Below, one piece after another: positions 32,882-64,000 of a stretch of 64,000 bases of DNA. The DNA is taken from sequence record NC_031039.1; one strand, 5' to 3'. Below the pieces are notes generated by a model, which saw only the letters and a list, made by a program, of their open reading frames with translations, was not told the DNA's origin and did not search any database. The stretch's first letter is position 1. Every line of letters starts with the position of its first letter. A program made the position numbers and the translations under genes.

Positions 32882-33793
32882 GTGATTATTATGCTAATGA
32901 CAAAATCTTTTAAAAATATACACCTAATTAAATGGGATATCTACACAGTTCTTAAAACACATGATAAAATATTAGATATACTATCGAATAGAGTAAATTA
33001 TCAGAAATTACACATTGAAACAATTTATACTGAATCTGGAATCCAAGTAGTACAAAAATTAACTAATGATACATATAATATATCCAAAAACAGTCTCCCT
33101 CTTTTATCTGATAGAGAAGCCAAGTTTAGTAAAGATGCAATGGATATGATAGTAAATAATTTTATGAATAGTTATAATTTAAAAACTCAAGATGAATATA
33201 ATAAATATAAAGAAATGCTTTTAAATAATGGGAATAATGAAGTTACAGTTGTTATAGATGCATCTAATATCGTGTTACAGACAAATCATATTTCTGATGA
33301 AGAAATAGATCGTGCTAAGAAACATCTAATTTCTAATCATGATTTTTATGAATCTAAAAAATTATGTGATGTGTGTGGTAAAAGATCTAATAATGTATCT
33401 GAAAGAAATGAATTTGGTAGATTTAAGATTCATTATTTCTGTGATGATCATAGAGTTAAGGAATTATATAAGAATAAAAGTATAATAAATAACCAAATTA
33501 TATCATATAATGGAAAAAATAAAATTAATCTTGGAGCTAAACCTACCTGTGATGTATGTAAAGGAAGTTTATTCACCTCTATATACACTGATCAATTTTA
33601 TTTATTATATGATGATACAAAAGTATGCAATAATTGTGTTTATAGTTATATAGGAAGAAATTTATTAAATCAACATGGACATAGATGTGAAAACTGTCGT
33701 GGACAAGGATATATTAGAGATTACAAACTCTATAAAGTAGATTGTGCTTATTGTCAAGGAACAGGTTGGATTAAGAAGGAGAATAGTAAATGA
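32882..33793 (+). CDS. Paralog family B member 1, multi-zinc-finger with DnaJ-type CxxCxGxG pair
   Basis: IHLIKWD N-terminus; CDVC..CDDH; CENCRGQG..CAYCQGTGW. Confidence 0.75.
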   Translation: MIIMLMTKSFKNIHLIKWDIYTVLKTHDKILDILSNRVNYQKLHIETIYTESGIQVVQKLTNDTYNISKNSLPLLSDREAKFSKDAMDMIVNNFMNSYNLKTQDEYNKYKEMLLNNGNNEVTVVIDASNIVLQTNHISDEEIDRAKKHLISNHDFYESKKLCDVCGKRSNNVSERNEFGRFKIHYFCDDHRVKELYKNKSIINNQIISYNGKNKINLGAKPTCDVCKGSLFTSIYTDQFYLLYDDTKVCNNCVYSYIGRNLLNQHGHRCENCRGQGYIRDYKLYKVDCAYCQGTGWIKKENSK

Positions 33794-34692
33794 GGGATCT
33801 ACATTTAATTAAATGGTCATTAGCAGGAATGATTAGATTTGAGGATTCATGTCTTCCTCAATTTGATAAAACTTATGAAATTATTTTTACTGATGGTTAT
33901 GTAGAATTAGTTTATAAACGAAAAAATAATTTTATTACATTTAAAGTACCTATTGGAATTAAATATGGGAAACCTTATCTTTCTAATGAATTAAAAAAAG
34001 AAATACAAGAAAGAACTATTACTTATTATTATAAATATGTTAATTGTCTAAAAAGAGATGAATATTTAGATTATAGGAATAAATATCTACAAAATAAAAA
34101 TAACAAAGTAGCTATTTTAAGAGATTCTAAAAAGTTAAAAGTATATGCTAATTACGAAATATCTGAGAAAGAGTTTCTAAATATTAGAAGGGAAAGAGTG
34201 AAGGTTGAGGATTTTCTCAAAGAGAATATATGTGAAGTTTGTGGTTCAAGAAACTCATTAACTAGATTCAATAGACACAATTTATGCACTAAACACTCAA
34301 TACAAGTTGAATTTAAAGAATATCATAGTTTAGAAGATTTAATTAGGGAAAATAATAAATTAAAATGCCATTGCTGTAATGAAGATATTTTAAAAACTGA
34401 TCTTTATATGAAACAAGATAAAGAAGCGAAAGAAAATATCGCATCACCAATATTCACAATATTTCATAATACGGATCCACTGGATAAAGATTTACACTAT
34501 TGTGATCAATGTAAAAGAAAGTTTAATGATAAAATAGTTGAAAATATTGTTAAACGATCAGAAATATGTAAATGTAAAGAATGTAATGGAAAAGGTTACG
34601 AAAGAAATTATTATGTAGAAAAAGAATTCTGTGAAAAATGTAATGGTAGAGGATGGGTTAAGAAGAAGGGAGTAAATAATGAAGTACAATAA
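33790..34692 (+). CDS. Paralog family B member 2, multi-zinc-finger
   Basis: LHLIKWS; CEVC..CTKH; CKECNGKG..CEKCNGRGW. Confidence 0.75.
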   Translation: MRDLHLIKWSLAGMIRFEDSCLPQFDKTYEIIFTDGYVELVYKRKNNFITFKVPIGIKYGKPYLSNELKKEIQERTITYYYKYVNCLKRDEYLDYRNKYLQNKNNKVAILRDSKKLKVYANYEISEKEFLNIRRERVKVEDFLKENICEVCGSRNSLTRFNRHNLCTKHSIQVEFKEYHSLEDLIRENNKLKCHCCNEDILKTDLYMKQDKEAKENIASPIFTIFHNTDPLDKDLHYCDQCKRKFNDKIVENIVKRSEICKCKECNGKGYERNYYVEKEFCEKCNGRGWVKKKGVNNEVQ

Positions 34693-35125
34693 TACCTTAG
34701 ATAGATTAAGGCATTTAATTAATTGGGATTTTGAAGATGTTATGAAATTTGATTCAAAAATACCAAAGAGTATTAAATATAATCATCAAGTCACTGACTT
34801 AATAATTCTGTATGAAGTAGTTCTAGCAGAAGAGTATATTGAGTTTATCTATAAAACCAATGATAAATTTAGATTATCAAAAATTATTCCACCTATTAAG
34901 AATAATAAAATAAAATATACAGAGGATTTCTATGATAGAATGTTAGCATGTACTCATCCTTTTTATACTGTTCCTAATACTAAAATATTGATCAAAGATG
35001 AATATGATAAATATAGATTAGAACTTATGAATAATTTAAAAAATAAAGTTATATTATTATCATATAACTCAGAAAGGATGAAAGTATATACAAATTATAA
35101 ACTATCAGGATTGGAGGAGATTTAA
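34679..35125 (+). CDS. Paralog family B member 3, N-terminal domain only
   Basis: LRHLINWD..DEYDKYR..NNLKNKV..MKVYTNYKLS; lacks all Cys fingers. Confidence 0.7.
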   Translation: MKYNNTLDRLRHLINWDFEDVMKFDSKIPKSIKYNHQVTDLIILYEVVLAEEYIEFIYKTNDKFRLSKIIPPIKNNKIKYTEDFYDRMLACTHPFYTVPNTKILIKDEYDKYRLELMNNLKNKVILLSYNSERMKVYTNYKLSGLEEI

Positions 35126-35272
35126 GATCAGTTAGAAAAATATATAGTTGTAATGAAATATAATATCTTAAAACGAATAGATGATGATAAATTAATCATT
35201 AGTTATGATATTACACAACTAATGATTAGTGAGAATAATCATATTTAAAAATACATGTAAAGGATGATGAAA

Positions 35273-35482
35273 ATGGCAATTATTAAGAAAGATTATGAAA
35301 CTATTCAAACTGAAAATGCTACAGAATATTATGATGAGGTTTTAAAGGAACGTGCTATTCCAGATCCTCGTGATGGATTAAAACCTATTCACCGTAGAAT
35401 TCTATGGGGTATGCATGTACATAAATGGGAATCAAATAAACCGCATGTTAAGTCAGCAAAAATTACGGGGAGCATTATTGGT
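35273..35482 (+). CDS. gyrA: DNA gyrase subunit A, exon 1 (70 codons)
   Basis: RAIPDPRDGLKPIHRRILWGM..KSAKITGSIIG; ends GGT at 5' splice site. Confidence 0.92.
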
Positions 35483-35836
35483 AAACAGTAGTTTCATTGC
35501 CTATCAATTATGATAGAGTATATAACTTAGCAATGAAATTCTTGCCGTCTTAAGTGGTAACATTTAAGATTATTAATGGGGGATTAAGCTGGGAGGGTTT
35601 AGTTATCCTGATCAGAGTCCGAAGGATAAATGTAATAATTTATTCAGGCGCAACGCATAGATTACTGAAACTTCACAAGATGAAGAATATAATGTATCCA
35701 CGAGACCCCATTAACCGTCTATTGTGAAATACATGGTTAAAAAGATATGCTATGCTGAGTTGGAAATGACCAACTGATGAAAATGAGGGAAACCTCCAGA
35801 GCATAGGATAAAAAGCCTATGGTTAATAACTAACAG
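35483..35836 (+). ncRNA. Group I intron 1 of gyrA (354 nt, no ORF)
   Basis: U at 5' splice site, terminal G; IGS TGCCGT; P3 AATGGGG/CCCCATT; P7 GCATA/TATGC; removal restores IIG-EYHPHG. Confidence 0.92.
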
Positions 35837-35932
35837 GAATATCATCCCCACGGAAATGCAAGCGTATATGAAGCACTAGTAAAAATGTATCAACCTTGGT
35901 ATGTCAATAAAAGCCTTATTGATGCTCATGGT
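35837..35932 (+). CDS. gyrA: DNA gyrase subunit A, exon 2 (32 codons, QRDR)
   Basis: EYHPHGNASVYEALVKMYQPWYVNKSLIDAHG; missed by ORF track. Confidence 0.92.
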
Positions 35933-36290
35933 AAGTAAAATCCTTTAATATTATATGAATACCGTCATATAATAGATTAGGCTCGTTAAAGGATATGCCG
36001 TTTTGTATGGTAACATACATCATTATTACTGGGGGATTAAGCTGGAAGGGTATAGCCTATCCTGATCAGAGTCCGAAGGATGGATGTAATAGTCCATTCA
36101 GGCGCAACGCATAGATTGCTGAAACTTCACAAGATGAAGAATATAATGTATCCAAGAGACCCCAGTATCCATCTATTGTGAAATACATGGATAAAAAGAT
36201 ATGCTATACTGGATTGGAAATGACCAATCGATGAAAATGAGGGAAACCTCCAGAGCATAGGATAAAAAGCCTATGGTTAATAACTATTAG
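35933..36290 (+). ncRNA. Group I intron 2 of gyrA (358 nt, no ORF)
   Basis: Core nearly identical to intron 1 with compensatory stem changes; removal restores DAHG-NFGSVYGDPAAAERYSEAR. Confidence 0.92.
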
Positions 36291-38405
36291 AACTTTGGAA
36301 GTGTGTATGGGGATCCAGCCGCCGCTGAACGTTATAGTGAAGCTAGAATCCATAAATTTGCAGAAGAGGTTTTACTTTCAAATATTAATAAAAACATTGT
36401 TGATTTTGTTCCAAACTTTGATAATACTTTAGAAGAGCCAAAAGTATTACCTTCTATTCTTCCAATGATATTAGTTAATGGTAGTCTCGGTATTGCTGCT
36501 GGTTATGCAACCAACCAACATCCACATAATATTAATGAAGTTATTGATGAGACTATTAAGTATATTAAAGATAATAATTATCAGATCAAGTTACTACCAG
36601 ATTACCCAACTGGTGGAGTAATTATTAATAAAAGGCAAGTAGAAGAAGCATATACTACTGGTAAATCAAAGGCTATTATTAGAGCAAGAATTACAAAAAA
36701 TGAAAAGAAACATGAATTAGTTATTAGCGAGATCCCATATCTAAAAACATCTGATAAACTAATTGAATCTATTCAAAATGTAGCTAATGATAGAATTGAG
36801 AAAGGTAATAAAATTCCTAAGAAGATTGAAGGAATTAAAAATATTAAGAACCTTTCAGAAAAAGGTAAAATTAATATTATTATTGAAGTAAAGAAAGGTT
36901 ATGATCTAGATTTAATTGAAAACCAATTATATAAATATACTAATTGTCAATTTACCCTACCAATGGACTTTAATGGAGTAATAGACAAGAAGTTTATTAA
37001 CTTTACTAACGTCAACCAAATTGTTGCAGAATGGTTAAATTTCCGTATTGTTACTCTTAGACGTTTATTTACAAATGATCTTAAAGATGCTAAGAAGAGA
37101 ATTCATATTATTGATGGGTTACTTACTGCGTTAGGTACTAATCTAGATCGTTTGTTAGATATTATCAGAACTAGTAAAAGTAGATCACAAATGGTTGAAA
37201 CTATTGTAAAAGAATTTAAAATTGAAGAAGATCAAGCTGAATATATTGTAAATATGAAATTATATCGTATTAACAATATTGAAATTGATCAATTGAAAAA
37301 AGAAAGAAAAGACTTAGAAAAGAAATATAACGATACGGTATTATACTTTAAAGATGATAATAAGATTAATGAGTATATTATCTCTGAACTTGAAAATGCT
37401 AAGAAAAAGTTTGGTTGTGAACGAAAAACAACTGTTCTAGATTTAAATATAGAAGATATTAATAATAAAGAAAATCTTATTATTGACAGCAACCATACTT
37501 TCATTTGTACTAATCGTTATATTAAGAAATTAAATAATACTATCAAAGTTCAAAAACGTGGTGGTAAAGGAAATAGTATTGGTAAGATTAAATCTGATGA
37601 TAATCCAATTACTATTTTTAATGCAAATAATAAGGATAATATTCTTATTTTTACAAATGCAGGAAAAGTTTATTCAAGAAAAGCTTATGAGATTGAAGGT
37701 TGTGAAATCCAATCATATGGCTATAATCTAAATGGTATTATTAAAGATGAAACTCTAACAAATGTCCTTGCAATGACAGATGATGAGATGAATAATGAAA
37801 ATATCAAAATTGCAATTGGTACTAGATTGAATAAAATTAAACTAGTAGATGTAGCAGAATTTAAGAATATTTATCAATCTGGTATTATTGCAACTAAATT
37901 AAATGATGGTGATAGTGTTATCTTTGCTCAAAAAGTAGATATGAAAGGAAAGAATTCTATTATTGCTTGCACTAATACAGGAGCAACAATTAATATGTCA
38001 CTTGACTCTATCCCAGTAGTTCTTCGCCCTACATTTGGTTCTAACATTTTTGACAATTCTATTATCAATAAAGGAGATTATATTGCTGGTATTGATCTAG
38101 TAACAGAAGAAGTATCACATGCTTTCTTTATTAGTAAAAAGGGATTGGGAAAACGAGTTGAAATCTCTGAGTTCCCTGAACAAATCCGTGGTGGTAAAGG
38201 TCGAATTGGAATTAGAGCAAAAGAAAATGATGAAATTGTGAGAATTGTTTCTGTTAAACCGGATTCTGACTTAACCATTATTAGTAATACTAGTATTATT
38301 GGAATGGACATTGATGAAGTAAGTGTATTACTCCGTCCAGCATTTGGTAACACTATTAAGAAATTAAATAAAGATGAGATTATTTTGGGAGCAACCGCTA
38401 TTTAA
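36291..38405 (+). CDS. gyrA: DNA gyrase subunit A, exon 3 (spliced product about 806 aa)
   Basis: Catalytic ERYSEAR tyrosine, PNFD..EP.VLP, GIAAGYAT, PDYPTGG, GyrA-box QKRGGKG, beta-pinwheel CTD. Confidence 0.95.
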   Translation, partial: NFGSVYGDPAAAERYSEARIHKFAEEVLLSNINKNIVDFVPNFDNTLEEPKVLPSILPMILVNGSLGIAAGYATNQHPHNINEVIDETIKYIKDNNYQIKLLPDYPTGGVIINKRQVEEAYTTGKSKAIIRARITKNEKKHELVISEIPYLKTSDKLIESIQNVANDRIEKGNKIPKKIEGIKNIKNLSEKGKINIIIEVKKGYDLDLIENQLYKYTNCQFTLPMDFNGVIDKKFINFTNVNQIVAEWLNFRIVTLRRLFTNDLKDAKKRIHIIDGLLTALGTNLDRLLDIIRTSKSRSQMVETIVKEFKIEEDQAEYIVNMKLYRINNIEIDQLKKERKDLEKKYNDTVLYFKDDNKINEYIISELENAKKKFGCERKTTVLDLNIEDINNKENLIIDSNHTFICTNRYIKKLNNTIKVQKRGGKGNSIGKIKSDDNPITIFNANNKDNILIFTNAGKVYSRKAYEIEGCEIQSYGYNLNGIIKDETLTNVLAMTDDEMNNENIKIAIGTRLNKIKLVDVAEFKNIYQSGIIATKLNDGDSVIFAQKVDMKGKNSIIACTNTGATINMSLDSIPVVLRPTFGSNIFDNSIINKGDYIAGIDLVTEEVSHAFFISKKGLGKRVEISEFPEQIRGGKGRIGIRAKENDEIVRIVSVKPDSDLTIISNTSIIGMDIDEVSVLLRPAFGNTIKKLNKDEIILGATAI

Positions 38406-62475: not shown

Positions 62476-63717
62476 ATGTCATTTTTTAAAGGTATTCGGA
62501 ACATAGAAAGAGTTCAATATGATCTAGTACAATATTGTGACAAGGAATTTGTTCCAAAATTTATAGCAAGTCAAAATATTGATGAAGATAAATTATACGA
62601 TACTATTGATTTTAGTTTACAGTTAGCTGAAAAATTACATTTAGATTACAATATGTGTTTTACAATTGCAGTAATGCATGATTTTGGTTATATTGAAGAA
62701 GATGAAAATAATTTTAATACATTAATGAGCATAAAAGCAGATCAATTTTTGTTAAGATATTTTGATGGAAGTCAAATGGAGATTATTGAATCTGCTTGTA
62801 AAGAACACGATGGTACAAGTAGAGAAACAGGAATATTTACATCTTTATATTCAAAGGTTATTGCAGATGCAGATAGGATGTCAATATTGAGAATTGAAGC
62901 TATGATTCGTCATTATTGGAAATTCTATTCTAATCAAAAGGCATTCTCTAATACAGATGAGCGTCCTAATAAACTAACAGATAAAGAAATTTTTGATAAG
63001 ATGTATAGTTTTCTAAAAAAAGAGTATGGTACAATTGTATCAAAAAATAAATTATTGTTAGAAGCATCAAGAGAAATGATGAAAGATGAAATTGAGAATT
63101 CTAATAAAGTATTAAGCTCTGAAGAAGATACAAAAAGAATGGTTCTACATTTAGCTACTTATGGGGAAATCCAAATAAATAATGATGGAACGCTTACCGT
63201 AGAAAAAATAACTAAAGAGCCAATCAGTGAATCAGATCCTTTTGAATTATTTGAAAAAAATATAAAAGAATCAGTAGATGAACAACTACTAGAAGCCACA
63301 CCAAAGAATCTATCAAAGAGACAAAAGGTAGAAGATTTAATATATAAGGTACTTTCAGTTTTAGATGATACTGGAGCTAACTTGAGAAAATATAAAGAGT
63401 TCTTTGGTAAAATGAACGATGAACAATTTGATAGGTATATGAAAAAATTCCTAAAAGATGAAGATGAAAATTTTTATCTTGAAATTTTACCTAATAAAAG
63501 TGAACCTTCATTAAAGCAAATTAAAAAAGCACTAGATATCTTAAAAGTACCAACTGATGAATATGTATATCTTCGACATGATGGTCATAAAAATGATCCT
63601 ATTAGAACTGCATATAAAGTACCTGTTGGTTATATTACAATTAAGCGAGTACAACAAATTCTAAGTAAAAAGAATACTTATTCTCTTGATATTGCACAAA
63701 GAAACATGAAATCGGGT
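62476..63717 (+). CDS. HD-like domain fused to virion RNA polymerase beta C-terminal subunit (phiKZ gp149-like), exon 1
   Basis: MHDFG/ADADR HD motifs; then KRQKVEDLI..DTGAN..YKEFFGKMNDEQFD..PVGYITIKRVQQILSKK..SG, ending at intron. Confidence 0.75.
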
Positions 63718-64000
63718 TATAATTGGCTCTCCATTATAGCAATATAATGGCAAACACTCTCCTTAATTTCTGGGATATCCTAATTTTTAGGACAATCAGA
63801 AGCGAATTTGAATAAAAACCTAATATTCAAAACGTTCAACGACTATCCGAAAGCAATCATACGATTGTGAGTAGCGGTGAAATTCCGCAATAGGAGTACG
63901 GCTCAAGCTATTGGAGTGGGTGAGAATCCCTTAAATGGAAACAGGAGGTATCCTTAACGGATAAAGATATAGTCTCGTCTCTATGGTAACATAGAGCAGT
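63718..64000 (+). ncRNA. Group I intron (IA-like) in RNA polymerase gene, truncated by window end
   Basis: GGT|TATAATTGGCTC P1; AATCAGAAGCGAA; TTCAACGACTATCC (P7 GACTAT 63841) pairing AAGATATAGTC (63969); P8 TATCC/GGATA; P9 CTCTATG-GTAA-CATAGAG. Confidence 0.92.

Follow-up and report, generated by a model that had tools for sequence, protein, structure and literature searches.

Two related ORF-less group I introns in the gyrA gene of Bacillus phage AR9 and the history of the second insertion site

The analysed window, a stretch of 64,000 nucleotides, is 100% identical to nucleotides 1–64000 of Bacillus phage AR9 (KU878088.1), with unchanged coordinates. It contains the gyrA gene AR9_g044 (35264..38405, on the plus strand, as are all features described here), whose GenBank coding sequence is a join of three pieces. 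AR9_g044 is an early gene. Exon 1 (35264..35482) starts at 35264 in the annotation, as compared with the in-frame ATG at 35273 chosen in a preliminary description of this DNA. It ends with the codons ATT ATT GGT (IIG) and matches positions 1–42 of the Pfam profile DNA_topoisoIV (PF00521). Exon 2 (35837..35932) comprises 96 nt, or 32 codons, is translated as EYHPHGNASVYEALVKMYQPWYVNKSLIDAHG (EYHPHG...DAHG) and covers profile positions 44–75 (E = 1.2e-9). Exon 3 (36291..38405) begins at 36291 with NFGSVYGDPAAAERYSEAR, runs to the stop codon and contains profile positions 76–432 (E = 4.9e-84) and a DNA_gyraseA_C match. The three exon pieces tile PF00521, and removal of the inserts at 35483–35836 and 35933–36290 yields an uninterrupted, conserved gyrA frame, a feature by which group I membership was judged. 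The frame and the tiling both agree with the earlier proposal that gyrA reads through only without these two inserts. Since GenBank already joins AR9_g044 from three pieces, both inserts were known as introns. The two gyrA introns are real and not new, and the added value lies only in their evolutionary history.

Based on the helix map, covariation, P1 fold and P9.0, the first insert is assigned as a 354-nt ORF-less group I intron (intron 1, 35483..35836). Its predicted elements are a P1 extension hairpin (35483–35542), the guide sequence GCCG (35544–35547), P2 (35549–35568), P3 (35575–35581 with 35706–35712), P4–P6a (35589–35648), P7 (35655–35659 with 35746–35750), P7.1 (35660–35698), P8 (35713–35738), P9/P9.1/P9.2 (35755–35821) and the terminal G at 35836. 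The second insert (intron 2, 35933..36290; 358 nt) is likewise ORF-less and is assigned the same architecture from its alignment to intron 1, compensatory pairs, P1 fold and P9.0, with a P1 extension hairpin at 35933–35995, the guide sequence GCCG at 35997–36000 and the terminal G at 36290. As described earlier, both inserts are preceded by TGGT, end in G and contain TGCCGT (35543–35548 and 35996–36001). The inserts align over 359 columns with a mean column identity of 90%, and introns 1 and 2 are 88% identical across the 301-nt core, which begins 7 nt before the guide sequence and runs to the 3' end. A core 21-mer occurs exactly twice in the window, versus zero expected. The near-identity of the cores noted previously is thus real, but the count of about 23 differences in about 270 nt is too low, as 36 columns differ in 301 nt. 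The 57-nt identical stretch at the 3' end (GATGAAAATG...AATAACTA) and compensatory pairs in all four helices listed before (P3, P6a, P8 and P9) were recovered, along with two P2 pairs. In total, the introns are distinguished by eight fully compensatory pairs, four single changes of the G–U type and two broken outer P2 pairs. Since these differences keep the helices intact, both copies are still under selection to fold, as had been proposed. The 60-nt P1-loop insertions are unrelated, also in line with that proposal, their similarity not exceeding that of shuffled sequences (p = 0.63). A bulged T in P7.1 is present in introns 1 and 2 and absent from the phage Goe21 and the aligned relatives. 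A candidate pairing between the tail TTAATAA and TTATTAA of J2/3 showed no covariation by eye and was discarded.

The assignment of both inserts as group I introns is supported by fold tests on MAFFT alignments with named structures, covering 14 full cores and a family set of 53 members. In the full cores, 97.2% of the cells pair, versus 77.7% in shuffles and at most 44.5% with the partner slid. Changes on both sides occur in 38 of the 62 pairs, including pairs in P2, P3, P4, P6, P6a, P8, P9 and P9.2; six of the seven pairs covary in P3, the pseudoknot partner of P7. The core thereby shows the P3–P7 pseudoknot, the P4–P6 domain, P8 and covariation. P7 is invariant in the 14 cores, and its covariation comes from the 53-member set only, in which four complementary variants were found (GCATA/TATGC, GCGTA/TACGC, GACTA/TAGTC and GAGTA/TACTC); GACTA/TAGTC corresponds to the R/S core of the textbooks. 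Heavy covariation in the same set is also seen in P7.1, P9 and P9.2. P5, the CTG/CAG helix of P9.0 and P9.1 never vary and thus have no support from covariation. At the 3' end, the J7/9 dinucleotide is complementary to the two nucleotides preceding the terminal G in 49 of the 53 members (mean of 26.5 and maximum of 34 in 1000 shuffles), with TG/CA followed by G in intron 1 and TA/TA followed by G in intron 2. This covarying P9.0, together with the terminal G, fixes both 3' splice sites. At the 5' end, the GCCG of each intron pairs with the (U)GGU of its upstream exon, placing a U–G pair at the splice site, and P1 forms part of the minimum-energy fold of both AR9 introns (z = −4.1 and −2.6), likewise in the relatives BpSp and L130. 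Inspection of P10 by eye revealed a plausible GAAT/ATTC pairing for intron 1 and only an offset CUUUGG/UUAAAG pairing for intron 2, which two AR9-specific exon changes would strengthen. Introns of subgroup IA2, the phage type, possess extra helices P7.1/P7.2 between P7 and P3' and extensions of P9. In the present family, all four pairs of the helix directly 3' of P7 change on both sides, and this helix carries an optional inner hairpin. BpSp has one further hairpin, and the P9.1 and P9.2 extensions are present.

The preliminary description had named the lack of a covariance-model match as a ground for rejecting the introns, and in formal terms this ground applies: the Rfam model RF00028 (Intron_gpI) gave no match in the whole window at the gathering score, nor at 35400–36400 at E values up to 10 with relaxed filters. 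The Rfam matches obtained there and in the window, PK-repZ (18 bits) and snoZ40, are at chance level. When applied to the loci of 19 relatives, RF00028 found other group I introns (in L012 and L051) and no member of the AR9 intron family. Since every family member in the 19 loci was missed, the silence of RF00028 does not refute the group I identity. The AR9 introns share with RF00028 the P3–P7 pseudoknot, an R/S-like P7 and the terminal G, yet the model gives their sequences no score, and we read the missing match as a gap in the coverage of the model. Subgroup-specific IA2/IA3 models from GISSD detected most Bastillevirinae phage introns (PMC11878797). Together with the annotation of the pieces as separate genes in several phage records, the missing Rfam match could also suggest that the inserts are not introns, and that gyrA is broken or split, or that translational bypassing or protein splicing bridges its gaps. 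Such a reading is scarcely credible, as stop codons occur in the gyrA frame within the inserts, intein domains are absent from them, their lengths of 354 and 358 nt are far too great for a ribosomal hop, and the 32-codon exon 2 has neither a start codon nor a ribosome-binding site of its own. The complete covarying group I fold, the conserved splice-site rules and the exact Pfam tiling instead point to RNA splicing.

We consider it highly probable that two related group I introns split AR9 gyrA, this judgement extending to the account of splicing and origin given below, taken as a whole. Each intron folds into P1–P9 with a P3–P7 pseudoknot, and both would belong to the phage IA type, with P9.1/P9.2 extensions and an additional helix separating P7 from P3'. 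The guide GCCG would pair with the exon end (U)GGU to create a U–G wobble at the 5' splice site, which an external guanosine would attack. The terminal G (35836 or 36290), positioned by the 2-bp P9.0, would enter the G site in P7, and the exons would be ligated. We infer this chemistry from the established group I mechanism. Intact GyrA (IIG-EYHPHG...DAHG-NFGS) would require the splicing of both introns.

The intron family is large, with an exact 23-mer common to more than 109 IMG/VR contigs, and TGCCGT is conserved in family members residing in other genes. Because this motif is family-wide, its common presence is not specific evidence for copying between introns 1 and 2. The survey of related gyrA genes proposed earlier revealed alleles with one and two introns, site 2 being either empty or occupied. 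AR9, PBS1 and Internexus carry two ORF-less gyrA introns. A single intron, with an endonuclease and with site 2 empty, is present in Goe21; BpSp has one ORF-less intron and phiR1-37 one endonuclease-bearing intron, and intron 2 is absent from all three. Environmental phages have gyrA introns at site 2 only. In the records of PBS1, Goe21, BpSp and phiR1-37, host genes are split and ORFs are called inside the ribozymes. The endonuclease-bearing relatives are Goe21, phiR1-37 (g328), L060 and L129; in Goe21 and phiR1-37, a LAGLIDADG ORF lies in the P1 loop of the site-1 intron. In the Goe21 homologue of intron 1, this ORF is a 960-nt insert between ctatca and gataga (LAGLIDADG_3, E = 8e-6), and its product shares 38% identity with phiR1-37 g328 (E = 1e-64) and 34% with the fragment of the L060 site-2 endonuclease. 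On sequence grounds, intron 1 is a deletion derivative of an endonuclease-bearing intron of the Goe21 type. A search for ORFs with a Pfam match found none in either AR9 insert, in agreement with the earlier statement that neither encodes a homing endonuclease. Endonucleases do, however, occur in their lineage, as the LAGLIDADG enzymes of Goe21 and phiR1-37 show. A candidate endonuclease remnant in the P1 loop of intron 2 (LVKGYAVL versus LVKNYAVL in L060) mostly overlaps the conserved guide sequence and was rejected. In local alignments against L129 and the 3' ends of four endonucleases, the intron 2 loop upstream of the guide did not outscore shuffled sequences (p = 0.27–0.81).

Site 2 is an independent and recurrent insertion site, which is also occupied by a family intron in three unrelated gyrA genes (L060, L129 and L130); two of these three introns contain endonuclease ORFs. 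Comparison of AR9 with Goe21 delimits an exon patch at site 2 (35932..36303), made up of the 3'-terminal base of exon 2 plus the first 13 bases of exon 3, in which 8 of the 14 exon bases differ (GGT AAC TTT GGA AGT GTG in AR9 versus GGG AAT TTC GGC TCA ATG in Goe21). The spliced genes differ at 45 of 2421 nt, with eight differences in the 14-nt patch and none in the rest of exon 2. The patch looks like a DNA-level exchange; reverse splicing in situ would leave the exons untouched. The nearest alleles without an intron at site 2 end in GGG (Goe21) or GGC (BpSp), not GGT. In the phylogeny, both AR9 introns form a clade with the Goe21 site-1 intron (AR9_I1 + AR9_I2 + Goe21_I1; support 96/89), and monophyly of the site-2 introns is rejected (AU p = 1.6e-15). 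The core of intron 2 as the closest known relative of intron 1 is supported by sequence comparison. The cores at sites 1 and 2 do not group by site, which suggests that ribozyme cores move between sites.

In the preliminary description, one ribozyme was proposed to have colonized a second site 96 nt away, probably by reverse splicing. Spelled out, a copy of intron 1 would have reverse-spliced into gyrA RNA 96 nt downstream at a guide-matched site, followed by reverse transcription, recombination and divergence. The proximity of the intron 2 core to intron 1 and the non-monophyly of the site-2 introns are consistent with this route, as are the TGGT at the end of both sites, the GCCG used by both introns, the lack of an endonuclease in either and the position of family members after GGT in other genes (L012), as guide-sequence-directed integration would give. 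We nevertheless regard it as unlikely. The changed exon bases relative to Goe21 include a TCA-to-AGT switch of a serine codon, and the intron-less GGG and GGC alleles lack the required U. Furthermore, the first 60 nt and the guide/P2 region of intron 2 do not resemble intron 1, with matches at 25 of 38 positions versus 38 of 38 between intron 1 and Goe21, and endonuclease-bearing relatives use site 2. Colonization of the second site by reverse splicing is therefore opposed by the exon patch, the recurrent use of site 2 and the GGG/GGC alleles. As for the broader claim that one ribozyme colonized a second site matching its guide sequence, the kinship of the cores stands, but the match carries little weight because TGCCGT is family-wide. 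Reverse splicing is neither shown nor favoured, and no evidence points to it specifically.

The sequence of intron 2 is a mosaic. From J2/3 to P8 it is 87–98% identical to intron 1 and Goe21, whereas for its guide/P2 region, J7/9–P9 and tail, other family members are at least as close as intron 1. The end sequences sort with the insertion site: intron 2 has the 5' nonamer AAGTAAAAT, compared with AAATAAAAT in L130 and AAATAAAAA in L060, it carries GCCGTT, and the tails of site-2 introns read ATTAG (as in intron 2) or ATCAG, those of site-1 introns AAC(A/C)G. These observations, as well as the exon patch, would fit a scenario that we put forward tentatively, as a serious possibility. In it, the ancestor of intron 2 would have been a site-2-specific intron of the kind seen in L060, L129 and L130, which was driven by an endonuclease and entered an AR9 ancestor by homing, accompanied by a short co-conversion tract. 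The central core of intron 2 (P3 to P8) would later have been gene-converted from intron 1, and its endonuclease ORF lost. The P7.1 bulged T common to introns 1 and 2 and absent from Goe21 and the aligned relatives is consistent with such conversion, although the P7.1 cluster could equally reflect hairpin evolution specific to Goe21. Cores from the two sites also mix elsewhere (L130–BpSp, 81%; L129–phiR1-37, 80%). Against this scenario, the site-specific end motifs of intron 2 are short and A/T-rich, and its P1 loop has no significant endonuclease remnant. More generally, the clustering of the intron 2 core with intron 1 is what a simple local duplication would predict. Searches for an AR9-like site-2 donor returned only AR9 itself in an IMG/VR pattern scan, two distant site-2 introns (71–73%) in a metagenome scan and nothing new in a blastn search of intron 2 against phages. 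It is also conceivable, though rather doubtful, that the twin introns bear witness to a group I ribozyme that naturally changed its site inside a single gene. A core of the intron-1 type would have taken hold at site 2, either through reverse splicing or through recombination involving a site-2 intron, and the copies, 96 nt apart, would still undergo gene conversion and could cause skipping of exon 2.

Overall, both introns are ORF-less and are probably now immobile descendants of a widespread mobile family whose other members carry LAGLIDADG ORFs in the P1 loop. Intron 1 would be the intron that resides at site 1 in AR9-like uracil-DNA jumbo phages, with its endonuclease deleted. Intron 2 has the central core (P3 to P8) in common with intron 1 and sits at a second site recurrently used by the family; we infer that it most likely came, or was reshaped, through recombination at the DNA level with a different intron-bearing allele, rather than through reverse splicing in situ. 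Occupation of the site may protect AR9 against the endonucleases of co-infecting relatives. The natural gyrA allele series, located in one essential gene of phages that grow on laboratory B. subtilis, is a tractable system for studying how introns are gained and endonucleases lost, as well as co-conversion. As the AR9 and Goe21 alleles differ in intron 2 and in the endonuclease, phage crosses could directly test mobility and endonuclease-mediated competition. Because the family is invisible to RF00028, automated annotation breaks the host genes apart and predicts ORFs within the ribozymes.

The abstract of the AR9 genome paper (Lavysh et al. 2016, Virology 495:185) reportedly describes multiple AR9 genes as interrupted by non-coding and putative endonuclease-encoding sequences, which are said to be group I and group II self-splicing introns, and splicing assays in that paper reportedly revealed guanosine-initiated self-splicing in vitro or spliced junctions in vivo. 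The gyrA introns already annotated for AR9 and PBS1 (KU878088, AR9_g044) and the present pair are the same object, with three exons joined over 35264–38405 in the record; the Goe21 allele was sequenced after the paper. Reviews cite the paper for jumbo phage introns (PMC13282480). The closest precedent is orf142 of Staphylococcus phage Twort, which contains three group I introns (Landthaler and Shub 1999, PNAS 96:7005; PMC10136302). Two of them are IA2 introns of high similarity on either side of a very short exon, and exon skipping between these two was observed (PMC10136302, PMC11878797). Both phages have several introns in one gene, but the three of Twort interrupt a tail-tube gene and its similar pair flanks an exon of 23 nt, while AR9 has two in gyrA, separated by a 96-nt in-frame exon. 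That a single phage gene can hold several similar group I introns without ORFs has thus been known since Twort, and the discovery value is small. The mobile phage group I introns of T4 td (I-TevI) and of the SPO1 and Bastille DNA polymerase genes resemble the AR9 pair in having an IA-type ribozyme in a conserved DNA-metabolism gene, in relatives of the AR9 introns with a free-standing endonuclease ORF in a peripheral loop, and in a co-conversion-like exon patch at the insertion site. The T4 td intron encodes a GIY-YIG enzyme and the SPO1 and Bastille introns HNH enzymes, with the ORFs in other loops. The AR9 copies differ from these introns in being ORF-less, and the enzyme of their family is a LAGLIDADG endonuclease encoded in the P1 loop.

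The gyrA region and the surrounding 12 kb match Bacillus phage AR9 (KU878088.1 / NC_031039.1) with 100% identity at the same coordinates, and PBS1 and Internexus are near-identical. AR9 is a 251-kb B. subtilis phage of the genus Takahashivirus, in whose DNA uracil replaces thymine. The CDS AR9_g044, annotated as "DNA gyrase subunit A", extends from 35264 to 38405 as a three-piece join in the GenBank record, indicating that the depositors already regarded both inserts as introns. The abstract of Lavysh et al. 2016 (Virology 495:185) reportedly describes multiple AR9 genes interrupted by non-coding or endonuclease-encoding sequences, reported there as demonstrated self-splicing introns of groups I and II. 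The existence of the gyrA introns is thus already public record, and the AR9 genome paper is cited for jumbo-phage introns in a 2026 review (PMC13282480). AR9_g078 (a virion RNA polymerase subunit; 62476–64000 and beyond the window) is likewise annotated as a three-piece join; since an Rfam scan of its part inside the window found no intron, its introns are probably located past 64000. Just upstream of gyrA, at 32882–34692, the two adjacent paralogous genes g041 and g042 encode DnaJ-family Zn-finger proteins of ~300 aa, and a third ORF nearby, g043, carries a comparable motif, HLI(K/N)W, at its N terminus.

Exon 1 ends at 35482 with the codons ATT ATT GGT, exon 2 (35837–35932) is an in-frame 96-nt segment translated as EYHPHGNASVYEALVKMYQPWYVNKSLIDAHG, and exon 3 begins at 36291 with NFGSVYGDPAAAERYSEAR. 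Searched separately against Pfam, these pieces matched PF00521 profile positions 1–42, 44–75 and 76–432, respectively. They tile the profile seamlessly, and gyrA is continuous once the inserts are removed. Intron 1 (35483–35836, site 1) and intron 2 (35933–36290, site 2) comprise 354 and 358 nt, and a core 21-mer is present in exactly two copies within the window, where zero would be expected. Their alignment has a mean column identity of 90%, with 36 of 301 positions differing between a point 7 nt before the guide sequence (GCCG inside TGCCGT) and the 3' end, and the 57-nt 3' stretch identical in both inserts is real. The 5' parts of ~60 nt are unrelated, their similarity being not above that of shuffles (p = 0.63). 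The ORFs inside both inserts gave no match in a Pfam search; neither insert encodes an endonuclease. The sequence statements of the preliminary description were all correct.

Comparative analysis yields a full group I architecture for the inserts, as had been proposed. The structure, derived for 14 complete cores, comprises P2, P3, P4, P5, P6, P6a, P7, P8, P9.0, P9, P9.1 and P9.2, with P3 pseudoknotted with P7. In these cores, 97.2% of cells pair, compared with 77.7% in shuffles and ≤44.5% with slid partners, and 38 of the 62 pairs show both-sided changes. Across 53 members of the large family to which the inserts belong, P7 appears as GCATA/TATGC, GCGTA/TACGC, GACTA/TAGTC or GAGTA/TACTC; the GACTA/TAGTC form, embedded in AACGACTAG ... 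ATATAGTC, represents the classical R/S consensus. P7.1 (the helix directly 3' of P7), P9 and P9.2 covary at nearly every pair. The J7/9 dinucleotide is complementary to the two bases preceding the terminal G in 49 of the 53 members (shuffles: mean 26.5, maximum 34), and TG/CA-G in intron 1 versus TA/TA-G in intron 2 constitutes a further compensatory difference. The minimum-energy folds of the two AR9 introns, and those of two relatives, contain P1, formed by exon (U)GGU on GCCG with U-G at the junction. Features typical of phage IA-type introns are the extra helix separating P7 from P3' and the extension formed by P9.1/P9.2. The 3' tail TTAATAA (35822–35830) is complementary to J2/3 TTATTAA (35569–35576), and intron 2 has the same elements; relatives inspected by eye showed no covariation between them, J2/3 varying without matching tail changes. 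Helices hold 23 of the 36 positions at which introns 1 and 2 differ, with eight fully compensatory pairs (two each in P2, P6a and P9, one each in P3 and P8), among which are the pairs listed in the preliminary description. The other helix differences are four G-U-type single changes and two outer pairs of P2 that are broken. These helix-preserving differences argue, as suggested earlier, that both copies are under selection to fold as functional ribozymes.

A covariance-model search, proposed earlier as a check, was run and gave no match to the AR9 introns: Rfam RF00028 was silent in the window at the gathering score and in 35400–36400 at E values up to 10. In 19 relatives' loci it matched 0 family members, although other group I introns were found there. 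Because a large family is missed throughout the scanned loci and comparative analysis yields the full architecture, this miss does not refute group I identity, and the assignment is right. The 23-mer GAAAATGAGGGAAACCTCCAGAG (J9/9.1 plus P9.1) occurs exactly in more than 109 IMG/VR contigs (L011–L119). In Clostridium, Staphylococcus and crAss-like phages, blast located related 3' domains in split genes for terminase, tail proteins and helicase, immediately upstream of the second half of the gene. An ORF intervenes in every case, and that of the crAss-like phage bears the annotation endonuclease / mobile intron protein. In a 240-kb viral contig, an Rfam-detectable group I intron (locus L012, 1967–2217, 104 bits) is followed ~110 nt downstream by an AR9-type member (~2330–2680), an arrangement that suggests a tandem of two distinct introns. 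In the PBS1 record MF360957, ORFs within the ribozyme cores (1572–1745 and 2013–2132 of locus L008) are named genes 233 and 234 and exon 2 has no annotation, while the Goe21, BpSp and phiR1-37 records divide gyrA into separate CDSs. These ORF calls and split CDSs are annotation artefacts of undetected introns.

The survey of gyrA in related phages revealed one-intron and two-intron alleles. PBS1 (two records) and Internexus contain both introns, as AR9 does. Goe21, which shares 97.6% identity with AR9 across the 12-kb gyrA region and differs at 45 of 2421 spliced gyrA positions, has an intron at site 1 only, and its site 2 is empty (GCT CAT GGG AAT TTC GGC TCA ATG). The P1 loop of this intron holds ~960 extra nt, an annotated 335-aa LAGLIDADG ORF with its own ribosome-binding site (Pfam LAGLIDADG_3, E = 8e-6). 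Since the flanks match around this insert (ctatca[...]gataga in Goe21, ctatca-attat-gataga in AR9), AR9 intron 1 is most simply a deletion derivative of the endonuclease-bearing form. BpSp has a single ORF-less intron, at site 1 only, and the site-1 intron of Yersinia phage phiR1-37 carries a 311-aa ORF that shares 38% identity with the Goe21 enzyme (E = 1e-64). Because the Goe21 and phiR1-37 introns carry ORFs, the gyrA intron lineage is endonuclease-driven, although the AR9 copies are ORF-less. AR9 and Goe21 align poorly over the 1.3 kb upstream of gyrA (~33970–35270; 829/1438 columns), their gyrA exons being 98% identical, which places a putative mosaic boundary close to the gyrA start.

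Site 2 is a recurrent insertion site of the family, not a one-off, since three unrelated gyrA genes are occupied exactly there (after the first G of ..GN(F/N)G..). In L060, a 133-kb IMG/VR contig with site 1 empty, the intron has a stop-broken ORF encoding a LAGLIDADG fragment that shares 34% identity with the Goe21 enzyme; in L129, an ORF end (...LDRKY...) precedes the guide sequence; in L130, the site-2 intron is ORF-less and site 1 is empty. The preliminary description had one ribozyme colonizing site 2, probably by reverse splicing. The kinship of the two cores holds: both AR9 introns and the Goe21 site-1 intron form a supported clade (96/89), and a tree constrained to unite the four site-2 introns is worse by 87 log-likelihood units (AU p = 1.6e-15). 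Despite this link, the comparative data do not support the route, and intron 2 is unlikely to be an in-situ reverse-splicing copy of intron 1. Such copying would leave the exons unchanged, yet 8 of the 45 AR9/Goe21 differences fall within a 14-base stretch around site 2 (−1 to +13; ~0.26 expected), including a serine codon switch from TCA to AGT, the remaining 95 nt of exon 2 being identical. Comparison with the outgroups BpSp and phiR1-37 indicates AR9 as the lineage in which most of these changes arose, and the patch looks like a short tract introduced via DNA recombination, or local selection. The empty alleles end in GGG or GGC and so lack the U on which P1 depends. Resemblance to intron 1 also varies along intron 2: J2/3 to P8 is 87–98% identical, whereas the guide sequence/P2 (25/38), J7/9-P9 (21/26) and tail resemble intron 1 no more than they resemble other family members. 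In these same parts, intron 1 and the Goe21 intron are identical. The ends group by site: site-2 introns have ATTAG or ATCAG as their tail and AAGTAAAAT, AAATAAAAT and AAATAAAAA as their 5' nonamers, and site-1 introns have the tail AAC(A/C)G. The shared TGCCGT, offered as evidence of copying, is genuine but not specific, being conserved in family members within other genes. A chimera of site-2-type ends and a core exchanged with intron 1 fits these facts somewhat better than a simple reverse-splicing copy, and a chimera or homing is a plausible, if tentative, origin. Introns 1 and 2 have in common a bulged T in P7.1 that Goe21 and the aligned relatives lack, a hint of conversion between the two copies. 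Against a chimera, the site-specific end motifs are short, the P1 loop of intron 2 holds no significant endonuclease remnant, and searches of phages, IMG/VR and metagenomes gave no AR9-like site-2 donor. Other DNA-level duplications take up the remaining probability.

By the established group I mechanism, an external G would attack after the P1 U-G pair, and the terminal G would dock through P9.0, leading to exon ligation; GyrA production would require removal of both introns. Occupation may also make the sites immune to the site-specific endonucleases that co-infecting relatives, for example Goe21, encode. The residual interest of the AR9 introns lies in the allele series and in core mixing between two sites of one gene. 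The guide sequence common to both introns and the resemblance between their 5' exon ends could allow ligation of exon 1 to exon 3, skipping the in-frame exon 2. Exon skipping between two similar introns is described for Twort orf142 (PMC10136302; PMC11878797), the closest precedent for the AR9 gyrA introns, now 25 years old.
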